Below are positions 7,370 through 63,744 of a stretch of 64,000 bases of DNA, piece by piece. This stretch comes from Oopsacas minuta (lineage: Eukaryota; Animalia; Porifera). Made by a program: the position numbers and the translations under genes. The stretch spans positions 398,743 to 462,742 of the forward strand of contig JAKMXF010000166.1 of assembly GCA_024704765.1 (NCBI GenBank). Direction: 5' to 3'. The notes beneath the pieces are model-generated. The model saw only the letters and a list, made by a program, of their open reading frames with translations, ran no database searches and was not told where the DNA came from. The first letter of the stretch is position 1, and every line of letters starts with the position of its first letter.

Positions 7370-8077
7370 ATGTGGCTCAGAATATTACTTGCTTTTCGTA
7401 GTAAGAAATCTACTCCAGGTAGAATAGCTGATTTTGTATTGCTGATTGGTTGGGTAGCTGTTTTGGTATGCAATTGTATTACTCTTCTAACTATGGGAAT
7501 AATTCCTGTTTCATCTACAGGAGGGGTATCAAAGCTTGGAGAATGTACATTATTTATTCATTTCGAAGAAGTTGATGGTGAACAAAAACCATTTTTGGAT
7601 GCCTACGGTAGTAACATTTGTATATTCACAATAATAGCTCCATGTTTAGTTGGAGTAACTACTCTCGGATTCATGTTATACCACGCTATCAAAATTTTTA
7701 TGGGTGTTAATCTTAGCTGTGTGGAAATAATCATTGCAGTTCTCAGTAGCATAATCTTATTGTTTGCACTCTCTAACGCCTGTATTATTACATTCGGTTT
7801 CATTTCATCTTGCACAAACATTGCCAGTAGTGAAATGGCGGATTCAAAGTCCGCACAAGCCTGTGGTTCAGGAATTTGGAACGCAATAACAACAGGTTCT
7901 AATTATGAAGTATTCAATACACTAAATGCATCACAAAGTTCTTCTTGGATTACAGTATTAATCCTTCTTATTCTTACTGTATTATACATTATCAGAGGTA
8001 CAGTATATTATCAACGGAAGAAGCATGGTTCTGGCCCTATTGCCGATGCTACCAATATAGCATCAGCGATGGTGTAG
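7370..8077 (+). CDS. TMEM179-like four-transmembrane protein, copy 2
   Basis: 235 aa, 4 TM; GECTLF...G..IC.F, IIT.GF..SC..I......C...and L..SQ...W pattern as in the TMEM179 family. Confidence 0.65.
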   Translation: MWLRILLAFRSKKSTPGRIADFVLLIGWVAVLVCNCITLLTMGIIPVSSTGGVSKLGECTLFIHFEEVDGEQKPFLDAYGSNICIFTIIAPCLVGVTTLGFMLYHAIKIFMGVNLSCVEIIIAVLSSIILLFALSNACIITFGFISSCTNIASSEMADSKSAQACGSGIWNAITTGSNYEVFNTLNASQSSSWITVLILLILTVLYIIRGTVYYQRKKHGSGPIADATNIASAMV

Positions 8078-9456
8078 CACGTCCTCAAGAATCAATAGAG
8101 TTATTTATAGTTATGAATAAACATATTTTAAATGGCTTGTAAACTTTTTTATTGTTTGTTCATTTGTTCATTTCTTTATATGCTTTTACTTGTATTTAAA
8201 GTGTAATATAATGTTAACATATATTTCAGTTAATTTAATATTTGAAAAGTTTTAGTTCCCGAGTTTATGTACTATCGAAATTATACTCTTGCACCTAGTG
8301 GTGTTATGTGGCATTAACTATGTATACAGCAATTAGCTAATTAGCTAACTAGCTGTGGTTGGTCACTTGGGGTGTAATCATGGGCGTAGAAAGCGCCCCC
8401 CATACCCTTTGCCCCCCTAAAATTGGTCCAAGGGGACCAAAATTCCATGGAAAAATGGTTCCTACCTTGAAAATGTTTGTCCCACAATAGGACCATTTTT
8501 CCATGGAATTATTGTCCTAGGTCCAAAGATTTATGAAAACTTTGGTGTTTATTGCATAGACCTCAACCTATTACACTCCAAATGTTGGTCATCACACGGT
8601 TCATCGCAATTATGTACAAGTAATGTTATTAGTTTCGATGAAAGACGAACCTAACATAATTTACAAGTATATATCAAATTGGAAATTTCGTCTACAAATT
8701 ATGATGACTACAAATGCTAGCCTAACCAGCATTTGGCTGGTCACTTCGAGTTTATGATTTTGGCCACTATTCGATTAATAGCCCAGGACTTTACTTGAAT
8801 TAGTGTCCAGCTTCCAGGAAATTTATCGGATGCCAGACTACCTCCTGATTGATGGATTGGGAGTTTTAGAGCTTAGTCTAGCTCTTGAAATGGAGATTTT
8901 CTCAAATTAGTTAATTATCAAGCTTTTCAGGTACTGATACTTCTTGAATCAGATATGACTCTCCATACCGTACTTTAGGGGTCAGAATTTTTCTACCATT
9001 ATTCACTTAACTATTCTCTGCCACAATATAATATAATATGAAATTGCTCTAACGAGCAGCTTCGCTTACTAGCGCTGTGAGGCTTACGAACAGGGAATTC
9101 CAAAGTAGAAATAGGTATATACCCAGAAAAAACATCACTGATTTTCGGAAGGAGATGTCTGGGTTTGGACTTTTGAAAATCTGCCAATCTTACCCCGTAG
9201 AATACTAACCGAAGTACGCTTATCCGCATATTCTTCCCGTATTCAGTGGAAACATCATCCGACACCGGTATAATCCGGAAGACCTCTATAATCTGAAATA
9301 GCTTCCGACAATAACAATTCACCTCCATAGTCAGGCAATTTACTCATAATCCGACGAAATTTTATGTCCCGATGAGTGTTGGTTTATGCAGGTTCCACTG
9401 TAATTTGTAGAAGAATATATAGTTTTGGAGAAAAAGTACAGTAAAACTTGGCTTAA

Positions 9457-56300: not shown

Positions 56301-59300
56301 GTTCTATATCGTGAATCATACCTATACTGACTTATTTACTTTGCTACTTATTGTACTCAATAGGCCTTTCAGTCCACCTTCTTCCGCTACTCCTCCTCTT
56401 GCCTACACAAATAGAGCTTCTAGTTTAGGTACATTTGAGTCTGTACTGAATGACAGTAATATTAATGGAGGTAGTGTACCTCATCTAGACAGGATACATG
56501 ATTCTCCTTCTGCTGCCATTCTTTCTACAAAACAGCACTCCAACTCTTCTCTCACTTACTCTAATCTATCTCGTGTTCATAATGTTAAGTCTACCAGCTC
56601 TACTCCTGTTAACACTATCAAGCCTCCCATAAATCAAACATATATTGCTCAAGCGAATGAATTGGCCATGACGTCATCTGATAACAAGTAAGATATGTGT
56701 ATATATTTCATACAATTAGTTACTTATAACTCTTTAATAGACCTCAATTACAAGAAGAGATAGAAGCTCCTATCCTAGGAGATATAGATATAACTGCTTC
56801 ACCTGGTAGGATTATCACAAGAGATCATACATCATTCATTCAGGTTCCTCACTCACAAACTCCTGCTCACATACCTGTACCCTACGGACACACTCTACAG
56901 GGAGTTGACACCAAGCAAGGACTGTCTCGAGCTGATTATGCGCTACTTCATAATTCTGGGTTTCAAGAGGTTTTGTCTAACAAAGGAAACCTCGCGGATT
57001 CTAATACCTATCATACTTCACAGTCTTATCCGAGCAGAGCTTGTTTATCTGTACAACTAATGGCATTTCAATTACCACTTAATCCTATAGAGAATATTCT
57101 AGAAGGGTACTCTTCTCTTGCAATGTTTGATGCTCCAAAACAAGTATTCTGTACTTACAAACTATTCAAATGGCAACCTAACACAACTCCTAAACTCTCA
57201 TTGGTTAGAAAAGAGATCAGACCATCTGATAAGAGGATTACTCCTTACCTCTTGATGGAGGAGGCTACTTCTAGTCCAGGGTATTTATCCGGCTACCAGA
57301 TCACTTGTCAGTCTCATGTCAGGGAGCTTATCTCTTATCTACACACATACAAGATACAGTTTGATTTATGGGATGGAGAGAGTTTGATGCTAATAGGTAG
57401 TGGATTCATATCTCTCAAGCAATTAGTCTCTAATCATATGGAATCAGTTCAGATGATTAAAGAATTGGAATTATCATCTCTTGATGTTTTTAACTCAAAT
57501 GATATTCTAGTTCTAGACCAAAATGGACAGTTTTGTCACTCACAAGGTCGTACAGTACCTCAAGGGACTCTTGTAATAAGATATAGTTACATGCCTGACT
57601 TCTCTGATTCTTATGTTTGTAATTTTGAACATTTCTACTCTCTTGACAGAACTGATTACAATTCTATTCTTAATGGAGTTAAAGTTAAACAGCAGTCAGT
57701 CAGACAAGCTAAACGAGTATCGAAGGTTAGAACATAAATTTTCTCGTAAACACAATCAGTGCTTAACTAAATTTGTGGGTTAATCAATAATAGGATACTA
57801 CAGTAGAACTCTGATAAAGACGTACTCCAGTAAAATATTTTAGAATGCATCATTTCGAATTACAACCAAGAGATAACGGCCCCCTTCAATGCTGTGGCCC
57901 CCCGCGAAAGCGGTGTTGCTGGGGCGATAGTTACGGCACTGAACACAATACGTATTAGATAGTAGTTACGTAGTTGTTTGTAGGTCAAGGTTGCAACCGA
58001 ATACCATATGCAGCTTTATTTGTGCGATATATTTAATCATGCGAACGTGCGGTTTTCCGCATTTCGCATAATTTTATTTACGGATAACTTTAATAACGAA
58101 AATATCTTAGTTGTTAGATACATGGTTGGTTGTATCGCACGAATAAGCTGTATATGGTAGTTCAATATTCGGCTACCAATCGAATATTGTCATTATTCGG
58201 TCAGGAGCTGTTAAGCTACATGTTATTGGTGATGTTATTATTCAATACTTTTCAAGCTGCAGTTTAAATATATTTACTGTTCCGGCTATACATTAGTAAA
58301 AGGTTCAGTTTTGATCTCAGTGCCCTTTGGGTGTCGTAACCTCTAAACAGCCACATAATATATGATTAAGAGTGGTTATTACTATTATACATATATTTAC
58401 ACTATAGTAATCAAAGCTATTATCCAATACATTGTGGGTTGTAATATAGTGTGTAATTGTTCAAAATCTGTGATTTGTCTGCTTATTCTAACTGTGAATT
58501 ACGTATTATAATAATACCAATAATATATTATTATTTTCTCGTTCTTGTAGGCTAAACACATGACTGAGACAGATGATAGTCTTCGTAGTATGCTACACTC
58601 TACAGCTGATGCAAATAGGCCAACAGGGAAAGAGAACACTAGAAAGTTAGAACGTATGCGAATGGTGAGAGGGGCTTCAGGACATACTCCGAATATATCG
58701 GAAGTTTCTCAAATTAAGAGAAGGAAAGATTTCCAGATTTTGGATATGTATCGTAAAGATAGTAAATTTCAAAAAATAGATTCTCTTCTGACTGAATTCA
58801 TTTGTTCTGAGATATCAATAGATGCTGCTGCAGGTATAGCTTATTATTATGAACACGAATTGAAGAATCCATTCAGCGAGACTCTTGTCCTTAATATTGA
58901 GATTCCTGATAGCTCAATATCTCTTGTGTCCAACTCAAATGAGCTCAGATATTTGAAAAGTATATACAACTCTCTAACTCCTGTAGAAAACGATTTGATA
59001 CATTTCAGTGATCAAAAGAACGAACCTCAAATATTTTTACAACCAAAAGAATCTGTAATTGTTCCATTTAAATACCAATCATTTAGAATTCATTCTCTCT
59101 CAAATGAATCGAAACATTTAGAAATGTTTAAGATCCAAATTAGGTTCTTAACAGAGGAGAACAGAGCTATTTCAGTCCTAACATTTAATATAAATCCTCA
59201 ACCTGTACTTACTGACTACACAATGCATTTCTATCATCCAGAGAGGATATTCTTTAGAAAAACATTCCTCCTACCTTCAACAATGTTTTCCCGTTCCACT

Positions 59301-60098
59301 GCTGACAATTTTGATGAAGTATCAGCGTTGTGTTCAGATAAAAACGTATTTGCTGTTTTTACTCGTAACGAAGTTGGTGATTCACTGCAGCTTCACGTGA
59401 AAGTTGCTTGTGAGAATCAAATTAATCAATACACATTCTTTCTAATGATATACAACGATAAATACCTTTCTAAGCCCACTCAAACTTGGGAGATTTGCAT
59501 TCACCCACTTGCACGTATCGATATGAATTGCACGATAGGTCAATCTTGCTTCGCTAAAGTCTACATCAAAGGTACAGCATATACTCGTGTAGTCCAGTGT
59601 TACAGTTCTCATCCACATGTTGTGCAGATACAACCAAAGGAAAAATTTGTGTTAACAGCAAACTCAATGATGGAAATTAATCTAGGAGTAAAACCAACAT
59701 TTATTGGCAATAGAAATATGTGTGTGAATGTTGTTGATCGCGAAATGTCACAGATAATTCAACAATGGATGATTTGTATTAATTCAAAAGAACCAAATAT
59801 ATCTCGTTCGTATCGTATAACAATACCAACACACGATTCTGTTATTACTACCAAAAGAATAACATTCAGAAATCCGTACTCGAAGAGAAAAGAATTTTTC
59901 TTACATTGCTCGCGAGCAGATATTCTGACTTTTAAGGAGAACAGCTTCCAAGTAAACGGACTCACTACTCACACTATTTTTCTAAACTTCCAACCAGTTT
60001 CCTACTCACTAGAACTCGATATTCTTATCTTTATCAACGATAAACAGGACAACACTGAAGAATGTTTTTGTATTCAAATTTCTTATGAAAATGTTTGA
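53375..60098 (+). CDS. NPHP4: Nephrocystin-4, five exons: 53375-54442, 55395-55804, 56364-56687, 56741-57725, 58551-60098 (1444 aa)
   Basis: All introns GT-AG with compatible phases; RLRVGIHNG, GLSRADYALLHNSGF, IQFDLWDGESLMLIG, C-terminal Ig/MSP-like repeats (YYEHELKNPF, KRITFRNPY, ILIFIND..DNTEECF). Confidence 0.9.
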
Positions 60099-60759
60099 AT
60101 ACTTTTGTCAGCTATACATTATTCGCCTACTAATATTACTTTTCAGAATGTGTCGGATTTAATAAAGGCAATGGTAATAAGTTTTTTTAAATATCGCCCA
60201 CCACCGCCACTTGATTCCTTACGTTTTGCAACCTAATAAAATAATTGTGGTATCATAAATTCAAAATCACTCCATAATAATTATTCGTGCTGAAGCGTAA
60301 ACACTGCTTAAGCTAATGTGGTATATGAGCGAATATCATATTGTTGAGAGAATTATGTTACAAATTCATTATTCCTAGATATTGTAATTCAATTTTCTCC
60401 ATTTTTGGTACAATTAACCACTTCAATATTAATTAGTACCAAAATCCAGGAGTTTTACACGAATATCTCTAAATTCATCACTAATTACCTAGCAAAATAG
60501 TATCCCTTCTTTACAAGAGGAATTAGTCCTAATTAACTTGCGATTTGGAATTTGTAGTTCTCATATAGCTTAGCTGTAACGTATAACACTGCTTAATTAG
60601 AACACATCGTGTTGCGTCGATTGAAATTCAACCTAGTATTACAATACAGTTTGACTCGTATAAAAAGGTATATTCCTCAGTAGTTAATTAAATAAACTAT
60701 TGAGTCAATCAATTTCAAAATTACAATTCAATTTTATTGCCTAATACTAACAACACACT

Positions 60760-62124
60760 ATGACTAGTTCAGGTTATTCTTCAGACAATGAGACTCCTTT
60801 CGGTTCTACCGTCTCCTCCTATATCGACCTGAGAGAAGTTGATGGAGCTTCTAATTTCAGGGAAGATTTCAAGATTATTGGTAAGTTTTTATAAAACTAT
60901 CATTTCTTGCGGAATTATTGCATTTAAATTAATAGCTAATTTTGTTATGTATATTACATAATGTTATGAAGAGTTTATTCTATTTTAGAAAAGAAGTTAA
61001 GCACAGCTACTTTTAACGAACAGGACTGGGTGAAATGCAAGTTCTCTCTGGTGACGGATAAGAAGTACTCCAATGTGATATTAATGGGGGACTTCACCTC
61101 ATGGGATAGTTACCCTATTACTCTTCAAGCATGCGAAAAGGGTTACGAAACTACAGTCATGCTGTTAAAAGGTGTATACGAGTACAAGTTCAGGGCAGAC
61201 GGGAAATGGACTTCAGATCCTCAAAATCCTTACAAGACTGCTAATTATGGAAACTCTCTCCTTTACGTTGGTATCAACCCCTTAGATTGGAAATGCAATC
61301 ACTGGAGAATGCCGAATCTCGAATATATTCGTCCTAATTGCAACTTCTGGTACTTCATAGAAGTACCTACAGGATTGACTGTTGAAGTAGGTAAGGCTGG
61401 ACTACGTAAAAGGCCATTATATGTCTTCCTACCGCCGGGCTATGAATCTGCTTCCTCTCCTCTGCCAGTTGTGTACACTATAGATGGTTACGATTCATTT
61501 TCTAATGGCAACGAAGGTCGTTTCTTAGATCAGTTTCTTGATTCCAAATGGAAAAGCGGATCCCTTCCTGAATTCATCTTTGTTGCTATTCCTAGTATGG
61601 AAGTTGCTTTCCCTGGATTTGAGAAGAAAGATTTATTTATTAAGAATTTCTCTGAAATCGAAAATGAAGCTTATCTTAAATTTCTTATCGATATAGTTGT
61701 CCCTACCATAAAGTCGAAATATAATGTCAGTTCAGATCCGAAGCACTCTGTTATAATGGGAGACCATTATGGTGGATTGGCCGCGTTTGTTGCTAGCCTT
61801 CTGTATCCAGAAACCTTTGGTCAAGCTATTTCCCTCTCTCCTTCTTTCGGATATCATGATCGTAACAATTCGTCAATCTTTGACTTTATGCGTAGTCAAA
61901 AACCGACCATGAAATCATTATTCTATCTAGACTCATCCAATATACCTGGAGATAATAAACATATGACTGAAGCTATGGCTACACATCTATCCAAGAGTAA
62001 GATTCCTTCAGTTAATTATCTACATCAAAATCTATGCTTCGATCCATTGGAAAATAAAGCAAGGCTTTCTAACCCGGATTGGCAAATGCGCGTTGAAAAA
62101 GCTCTTCACTTTATTTTCAAATAA
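60760..62124 (+). CDS. CBM48 (AMPK-beta-type glycogen-binding) + alpha/beta-hydrolase putative-esterase-fold protein; exons 60760-60880 and 60989-62124 (418 aa)
   Basis: GDFTSW..YEYKFRADGKWTSDPQNP..YGNS; LYVFLPPGY..LPVVYTIDG; Y..FL.DIVVPTIKSKY; MGDHYGGL; AISLSPSF; phase-1 intron GTAAGT..TTTTAG joins in frame. Confidence 0.8.
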
Positions 62125-62394
62125 TCCTGACGTTAATCAGCACTCATACACATAATTTCCAAATTTCCCCTGTTTCATGACTCAAATAATGTAAATATCT
62201 GTATTCTGTCTCCCTAAACTACATATACTATTAACTTGAATAATTACATTTAACACACGTGTTCTTTGAATTATGTTCTGTGGGTTGGATATACTGTTTA
62301 CATATTTTATGCCTGTGTCGTAGTTCCAGTTTGTAATTACAAGATACTTACTTGATATTGAAACTATTCATTCTTCTAACCCATTTTTATTATA

Positions 62395-63744
62395 CAGTGT
62401 CGGTCAAAATGAATTGCTCAAGATGAATGTATACAGTATAGTAAATGTCAAATTGTATACACTGGCCAGATAGTTGAATTCTTGCGAAACCATACTCAGC
62501 CATTTGTATTTTGACAAATAACACACCACACAGCTAATCCACTCATTATATTTGCACAACTTGCAGTTTTTATTTTGTATTCCTTTTTTTCCAATTTATC
62601 TGTTTTTATCGAATTTTCAATGCCTTCTAAACCCCGAATTTCCATTGAAAATCGAGCCAACCTGATACTACTTTCAGAAAGTGGCCATACTCAGATGGAG
62701 GTAGCTAAAATGGTTGGGTGTAGCCAAAAAAGTGTAGCCAAGATCCTTAAGAAACACAGGCTGACTGGCACGGTAAGAGACCTCGCTATTCCGCGTAGGC
62801 CTCGTGTCACAACCAAAAGGCAAGACAATTTATTGGTCAGAAAATGCAAAAAGGATCGATTTAAGACTGCTATTCAGATCAAAACTGAAGTGTTATCAGA
62901 ATATTCGATAAAACTTTCCACTTCAACAGTTCAGAGAAGGTTACGAGGGGCTGGACTGTTCGGACGAAACCGCGAAGGAAGCCCCGCCTTACTATCAAGC
63001 ACAAAAGAGACCGACTTTCCTTCACAAGATCGAACAAGTATTGGAATACTGAAGAATGGGCAAGAGTTGTGTTCAGTGACGAATCTAGGTTCCTACTGTA
63101 TACTAATGACGGGAGAGCCTACGTCAGGAGGATGAAAAGGGAGGAGTTCTCAGGGAGGTGTCTTCAAAAACTTGCAAGTTTGGTGGAGGTGGCATCATGG
63201 TTTGGGGATGGTTTTGCTGGAGTGGCGTAGGACTCTTGTGGAAAGTATCTGGGAACCTCAAGACAATTCCTACATTGATATATTGGAAAATGCACTAATC
63301 CCAAGCGTTGATTTGCATTCTCTACACTCTGGATGGACCTTTCAGCAAGACAACGCCCCATGCCATAGGTCAAAGGGTACTAAGCAATGGTTTGGTGAGC
63401 AAAAAATAGAGGTTATGAATTGGCCTGCTCAGTCACCTGATCTAAATCCGATTGAGAATCTTTGGGATCACATTTCCCTCAGAATTCAAGAGAAAAGCCC
63501 ATCCAACCACTCAGAGTTGTGGAATGCCATATTAAGCACTTGGGATAGCATCGACATTAACAGGCTCCATACTCTAATTGAGAGTTGCCGCAAAGATGTA
63601 AAGCCGTAATTCAAGCAAGAGGAGGTTCTACTAAATACTAACAACAATTTACTTGATTATAATAAAGCATTATAGTTAAAATCAGTCATAGATATAAGAA
63701 ATTGGGGTAAATTTATTCTGAGCAATTCTTTTTGACCGGCACTG
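62395..63744 (+). mobile_element. Tc1 (DD34E) transposon, full length, transposase frameshifted (62620-63640)
   Basis: TA|CAGTGTCGGTCAAAATGAATTGCTC ... GAGCAATTCTTTTTGACCGGCACTG|TA; paired-like HTH, VFSDES, QQDNAPCH..WPAQSPDLNPIENLW with 34 residues between D and E. Confidence 0.95.

Follow-up and report, generated by a model that had tools for sequence, protein, structure and literature searches.

A two-exon gene of the glass sponge Oopsacas minuta encodes a protein in which a CBM48 module precedes an esterase-like alpha/beta-hydrolase domain; this protein is unable to use the Ser-His-acid mechanism by which its family works, and the whole of the domain is still under constraint. We consider it probable that the gene is a paralogue, belonging to the glass sponges (Hexactinellida), of Ser-bearing eukaryotic CBM48-esterases, that its pocket has been rebuilt and that its product acts as a non-hydrolytic, glucan-held binding or scaffold protein.

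As read from the sequence of the window (the whole 64,000-nucleotide stretch of DNA analysed here), the gene occupies positions 60760-60880 and 60989-62124 of the forward strand, on which its mapped parts also lie, and runs from an ATG at 60760 to a TAA stop codon. Exon 1 (60760-60880) contributes 40 codons and one further base and encodes a tail (MTSSGYSSDNETPFGSTVSSYIDLREVDGA...) that is acidic, rich in Ser and Thr and, by prediction, disordered. The 108-nt intron that follows (60881-60988; GTAAGT...TTTTAG) is of the GT..AG type and in phase 1, and exon 2 (60989-62124) holds the remaining coding sequence, comprising the CBM48, a linker, the esterase-like domain and the stop codon. Translation of the joined coding sequence, 1257 nt in length, reproduces exactly (418 aa, 100% identity) P0001, listed at NCBI as 'carbohydrate esterase [Oopsacas minuta]' on a contig of 788 kb. 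The protein has no signal peptide and is therefore probably cytosolic; its bacterial relatives do have one.

Evidence for transcription comes from run X4, which shares its sample with the genome runs and was treated as RNA by inference from its depth and from the form of its contigs, which are short and adapter-flanked. X4 depth climbs from ~100 to thousands at 60708-60715, where the RNA-like contigs start, remains in the thousands over 60708-62230, is zero in the intron bin and drops to ~290 past ~62228, the flanks lying at ~100-290. The approximate transcribed span is 60708-62230, with the intron absent from the mature RNA, and a putative TATA-like element, TATAAAAAGG (60659-60668), stands ~45 nt 5' of the starts of the RNA-like contigs. 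One X4 contig begins at 60988, and in front of this point it carries TCAAGATTATT, with which exon 1 closes; a Trinity transcript of the glass sponge Vazella pourtalesii (EukProt EP00800, P0297) encodes the same joined N-terminus, providing independent support for the splice. With X4 taken to be RNA, the gene is expressed and spliced, and the genomic sequence, the RNA-like contigs and the Vazella transcript all bear out the suggestion of an earlier note on this DNA that a canonical 108-nt intron adds an acidic N-terminal exon. The run and assembly accessions concerned in this work are SRR2064712, SRR22824298, SRR30952584, ERZ25766962, ERZ20067936 and ERZ25068665.

The product of exon 2 matches the Pfam Esterase family (PF00756) over residues 139-285 with 68.6 bits, the cut-off being 22. 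AlphaFold modelling with 43 aligned sequences, which replaced a run with 7 sequences (pLDDT 58), yielded a model with pLDDT 86 and pTM 0.85, composed of a beta-sandwich at ~54-134, the strands of which exceed a pLDDT of 90, a linker and an alpha/beta-hydrolase domain. The fold and the pocket-forming elements are likewise modelled with pLDDT above 90; residues 1-45 fall below 50 and are disordered in the model. In the window, the CBM48 (AMPK1_CBM) beta-sandwich maps to 61030-61290 (~residues 55-140) and the PF00756-type hydrolase domain to 61360-62121 (~residues 165-418).

The best Foldseek matches to this model are the two-domain CBM48-CE1 feruloyl esterases (8BF3, 6RZN, 7B6B) and Fes (3C8H), with E-values from 1e-19 to 1e-15, and the probability reaches 1.00 for feruloyl esterases, Fes, IroE-like proteins and FrmB. 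At 13-17%, sequence identity to these matches is low, and the rmsd over the two domains together is large; the packing of the domains in the model therefore differs from theirs. The closest structural likeness is to the bacterial CBM48-CE1 feruloyl and acetyl-xylan esterases (wtsFae1A/B, 6RZN/6RZO/8BF3; DmCE1B, 7B5V/7B6B; Bacint_01033/01039), which share the order of CBM48 followed by alpha/beta-hydrolase (Foldseek E ~1e-19) and show 15-17% identity, another domain orientation and an rmsd of 14-15 Å over both domains. These enzymes belong to PULs, are secreted and have a Ser-His-Glu triad, whereas the Oopsacas protein is eukaryotic, without a signal peptide, Ser and His are absent from it and its CBM48 scores best against AMPK beta; in place of a PUL context, its intron-bearing gene sits between NPHP4 and a transposon remnant. 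Fes, IroD and IroE (PF00756) also combine an N-terminal beta-sandwich with a PF00756 hydrolase, and the Oopsacas elbow region matches NCBIfam PRK10439 locally, but the protein reaches 40.7 bits against an equivalog cut-off of 222, has lost the triad and has no siderophore context.

The CBM48 module matches PF16561 (AMPK1_CBM) with 46 bits (6e-12; gathering cut-off 26.8), and its best sequence match among solved structures is the CBM of AMPK beta1 (3e-7). Of AMPK beta1 residues W100, K126, W133, L146 and N150, which we take to be those that contact the sugar, the first three have identical equivalents that are invariant in the clade of the Oopsacas protein; the equivalent of L146 is Tyr and that of N150 is Leu, so that two of the five contact residues differ, and the AMPK alpha/gamma-binding C-terminal region is missing. 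Against the AMPK model the Oopsacas module scores 46 bits and those of its Ser-type relatives ~27, and because of this higher score and of the retained W100, K126 and W133 equivalents a tethering of the protein to glycogen or another alpha-glucan through its CBM48 is plausible. Glucan binding is not to be assumed, since none of the glycans tested was bound by the CBM48s of bacterial CE1 esterases (PMC8040265).

Two members of the triad have been replaced. The former nucleophile elbow (61759-61776; codons GGA GAC CAT TAT GGT GGA) reads G-D-H-Y-G-G, with His300, encoded by CAT at 61765-61767 and two changes away from TCT or AGT, in the place of the catalytic Ser. In the C-terminal stretch ARLSNPDWQMRV, Leu400 (62065-62067) aligns with the catalytic His of relatives (T-H-x-E-x-x-W). 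The earlier note had read both the elbow and the missing C-terminal His from the sequence, and both readings hold. It had also raised the conservation of the elbow motif in related animals: G-D-H is present in 14/14 clade sequences retrieved, always as G-D-H-x-G/A-G and at mutual identities of 47-81%, and since all 14 members carry it the motif exceeds what chance predicts. The former catalytic His position is occupied by L, Q or N across these 14 sequences. Among the non-clade sequences of alignment A4, 35 of 36 keep the Ser. A putative catalytic acid, Asp362 (G-D-N), placed after strand beta7 by alignment and spacing only, is kept in most clade members and is Gly in P0007, the most divergent. 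At locus L087 (6001-6987; P0006), in a basal glass-sponge assembly, the elbow reads G-D-H-E-A-G and not G-D-H-Y/H/F-G-G, the Asp-His being fixed while the subsequent residues drift.

Beyond the elbow, comparison with the 36 relatives reveals positions that are invariant in the G-D-H clade and at which a different residue is conserved elsewhere, among them Gln208->Tyr (DGQ), Ser300->His, Trp328->Gly (SPSFW) and Gly357->Ser (LDSG), in addition to the lost catalytic His. In alignment A4 these four family-wide active-site motifs are altered jointly in the G-D-H clade only; they are the most conserved active-site motifs of the family, changed together and then fixed. Hydrolysis thus appears, from these replacements, to have been lost throughout the clade.

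The clade was assembled from six relatives at 47-70% identity found by word search and from further ones found by cluster look-ups. It draws on Oopsacas, Vazella and at least four further assemblies resembling glass sponges, the ENA assemblies being called glass sponge by similarity and synteny and not by metadata. The reading frame is intact in at least six genomes. L002 and L087 share the position of the phase-1 intron to the codon, and L001 has an acceptor at that place; in L002 and L087 the orthologue has NPHP4 domains upstream and a protein kinase downstream, and NPHP4 precedes the gene in three genomes. The exon 1 acidic motif SDNETPFGS.VSSY.D.RE is kept in P0002, in Vazella P0297 and at the L087 locus. 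In the window, the ORF directly upstream (58560-60098, 512 aa) is the counterpart of the NPHP4 Ig-domain ORFs of L002 and L087, and Pfam gives only weak ASH-like matches to the ORF itself. Downstream, a broken Tc1/mariner-type transposon (62575-63609), with ORFs in different frames (HTH_Tnp_Tc3_2/HTH_23 at 62575-63135 and DDE_3 at 63172-63609), takes the place that a protein-kinase gene, ~1.3 kb 3' of the esterase-like gene, holds in two other glass-sponge assemblies.

Between Oopsacas and P0002 the dN/dS ratio is 0.105, dS being saturated in all other pairs. Relative to a ~95%-identical relative (run X5), the exons carry 15 synonymous and 8 non-synonymous differences; the intron carries 17 substitutions and 2 indels in its 108 nt against a ~3% divergence of exon 2, that is, it diverges ~5x faster than exon. 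Selection is strong across the whole esterase-like domain, and these comparisons indicate a functional gene under strong purifying selection, not a decaying one. The suggestion that the protein is conserved and yet non-catalytic as a serine hydrolase is supported by the replacement of Ser and His in every member, by expression and splicing and by purifying selection.

The relatives of the clade were sought with an exhaustive profile search of 1.84 billion representatives, which returned 5790 matches. The representative of the clade itself scores 614 bits, followed by P0008 (261), P0009 (243), P0011 (195), P0012 (181), P0013 (172), P0014 (168), P0015 (157) and P0027 (138), all eight of which keep G-x-S-x-G/A-G and T-H-x-E-x-x-W. 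P0015 is from the calcareous sponge Sycon ciliatum and P0014 from the stramenopile Platysulcus tardus; the latter bears an extra C-terminal GGACT (gamma-glutamyl cyclotransferase-like) domain at residues 415-493. P0008 adjoins CFAP47, mitochondrial-carrier and ANTH genes, P0012 adjoins a Pao retrotransposon and P0027 lies between Ras and Tim17 genes. A large separate set of matches, P0017-P0056 (~480 aa, with four matched stretches), consists of four tandem CBM48-like repeats that score 120-150 bits against the CBM48 part of the profile. The eukaryotic Ser-type CBM48-esterases (Sycon ciliatum P004672, Platysulcus tardus P006080 and glass-sponge P0008) share with the Oopsacas protein its architecture, its linker motifs and the absence of a signal peptide, are 28-38% identical to it and fall with it in one clade of the full-length tree. 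They keep G-x-S-x-G/A-G, T-H-x-E-x-x-W, DGQ, SPSFW and DSG, whereas the Oopsacas protein has changed all of these and adds the conserved acidic N-terminal exon.

One of these Ser-type proteins provides the link to a duplication within the sponges. A single assembly, ERZ20067936, encodes the G-D-H-type P0006 (contig ptg000102l, with NPHP4 synteny) and the Ser-type P0008 (contig ptg000152l). P0008 has as its neighbour a PICALM gene that shares ~70% identity with its counterparts in Oopsacas, Vazella and five further assemblies, the next matches falling below 50%, and because of this likeness the contig of P0008 is taken to be glass-sponge DNA as well. Since one glass-sponge assembly encodes both, the comparison indicates that glass sponges carry an intact and a rebuilt copy and that these are paralogues. 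Compared with most other eukaryotic members, P0008 and the sequences of the G-D-H clade lack the same 7 residues, and a topology with P0008 as sister to that clade is not rejected by the AU test (p 0.318). In L003 at ~8066-8080 (P0008), a polypyrimidine-AG candidate acceptor matches the Oopsacas intron exactly in codon and phase; read-through of an intron may thus account for the N-terminus called for P0008, and the intron may be older than the duplication. P0012 and P0013 begin with an ATG near the Oopsacas intron point and give no hint of a further exon upstream.

The origin and the state of the gene admit other readings. The earlier note saw in the gene a horizontal acquisition, and the corresponding account, in which a bacterial CBM48-esterase gene was gained by the sponge lineage, given an intron and domesticated, draws on the overwhelmingly bacterial content of the large clusters with this architecture, on the patchy eukaryotic distribution seen (sponges and a few protists) and on the position of the eukaryotic clade next to bacterial groups on the full-length tree. 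Homology search and phylogeny nonetheless lead to eukaryotic Ser-bearing proteins as the nearest relatives: bacterial full-length relatives score at most 120 bits against 138-261 for the eukaryotic Ser-type proteins, and among 282 GTDB matches the best reach 22-33% identity. In the full-length tree (35 sequences, LG+C20 PMSF) the glass-sponge and eukaryotic proteins stand apart from all bacterial ones with a support of 99/95, the G-D-H clade lying inside the eukaryotic group on a stem of 1.1 changes per site; the tree of the esterase domain only has a backbone polytomy, and on that alignment a single clade of glass-sponge and eukaryotic proteins is not rejected by the AU test (p 0.169). The Ser-type paralogue in a glass-sponge genome, a GC content (0.40) matching that of neighbouring genes and the conservation of intron and synteny across glass sponges also stand against acquisition by the sponge lineage, which we regard as highly improbable; a recent or sponge-specific bacterial transfer is, on these sequence comparisons, not supported. 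Because the eukaryotic distribution is patchy, the whole eukaryotic family may yet descend from an ancient transfer from bacteria. Loss of two triad residues is also what decay would yield, and a decaying pseudogene or an annotation artefact was considered and rejected on the conservation and expression data (an intact frame in at least six genomes, a dN/dS of ~0.1, high RNA-like depth and a spliced message), which make it hardly credible.

A different possibility is that the protein is still an enzyme, the rebuilt pocket being a new catalytic or metal-binding site that could act on a group linked to a glucan, for example through a relocated nucleophile or by a mechanism based on His or a metal. 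Candidate residues for such a site can be named (Asp299-His300, Tyr208 and Ser357, with the retained Asp362 and His330-Asp331), and pocket residues stay unchanged among members with an overall identity of only 47%, whereas the position of the former catalytic His drifts; the strong selection over the whole esterase-like domain and the confidently modelled fold and pocket elements also speak for it. On the other side, Asp362 is lost in P0007, and the elbow is structurally constrained, so that invariance there is weak evidence; we are aware of no documented mechanism for an alpha/beta hydrolase whose nucleophile elbow carries His. Altered chemistry is on balance unlikely, and we hold as slightly more doubtful the particular proposal that the His-for-Ser elbow forms, together with Tyr208, Gly328 and Ser357, a new active or ligand site that the AMPK-type CBM48 would tether to glycogen. 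If the latter were true, glass sponges would possess an enzyme or sensor of their own that is associated with glycogen and has a chemistry unseen in alpha/beta hydrolases.

In the explanation that we favour, that of a rebuilt and non-hydrolytic paralogue, an intact Ser-bearing eukaryotic CBM48-esterase gene would have been duplicated and the active site of one copy rebuilt on a long branch, with Ser300->His, Gln208->Tyr, Trp328->Gly, Gly357->Ser and a variable residue replacing His400; the rebuilt state would subsequently have been frozen by purifying selection. Classical Ser-His-Asp esterase action would no longer be possible, the CBM48 may anchor the protein to glycogen or another alpha-glucan, and a ligand or a partner may be bound by the remodelled pocket and the conserved N-terminal motif. 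A non-hydrolytic binding or scaffold role is, we infer, the most likely one. Neuroligins and ABHD5/CGI-58 are pseudoenzymes of the alpha/beta-hydrolase fold in which the nucleophile was lost and the duplicate kept for a binding role; the Oopsacas protein differs from them in its subfamily, in its coupling to a CBM48, in the His at the nucleophile position and in its restriction to glass sponges.

That the gene is annotated and that alpha/beta hydrolases have pseudoenzyme paralogues was already known. New are the glass-sponge-restricted His-for-Ser clade, its pairing with an AMPK-type CBM48 and the eukaryotic CBM48-esterase family. No paper on such a family was found in the searchable literature, a literature search combining CBM48 with pseudoenzyme or Porifera gave no match, and the Oopsacas genome paper discusses neither the gene nor horizontal transfer. 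Because nucleophile and base are absent, the public label 'carbohydrate esterase' is misleading for a protein that lacks both, and the case warns that a 'bacterial-looking' domain architecture is by itself not enough to infer horizontal transfer. The analysis brings to light a CBM48-esterase family that is eukaryotic and cytosolic and occurs in sponges and some protists, and the intact and rebuilt copies that lie side by side in glass sponges constitute a clean natural pair for studying the role of a CBM48-tethered esterase in animal cells and the repurposing of a hydrolase pocket.
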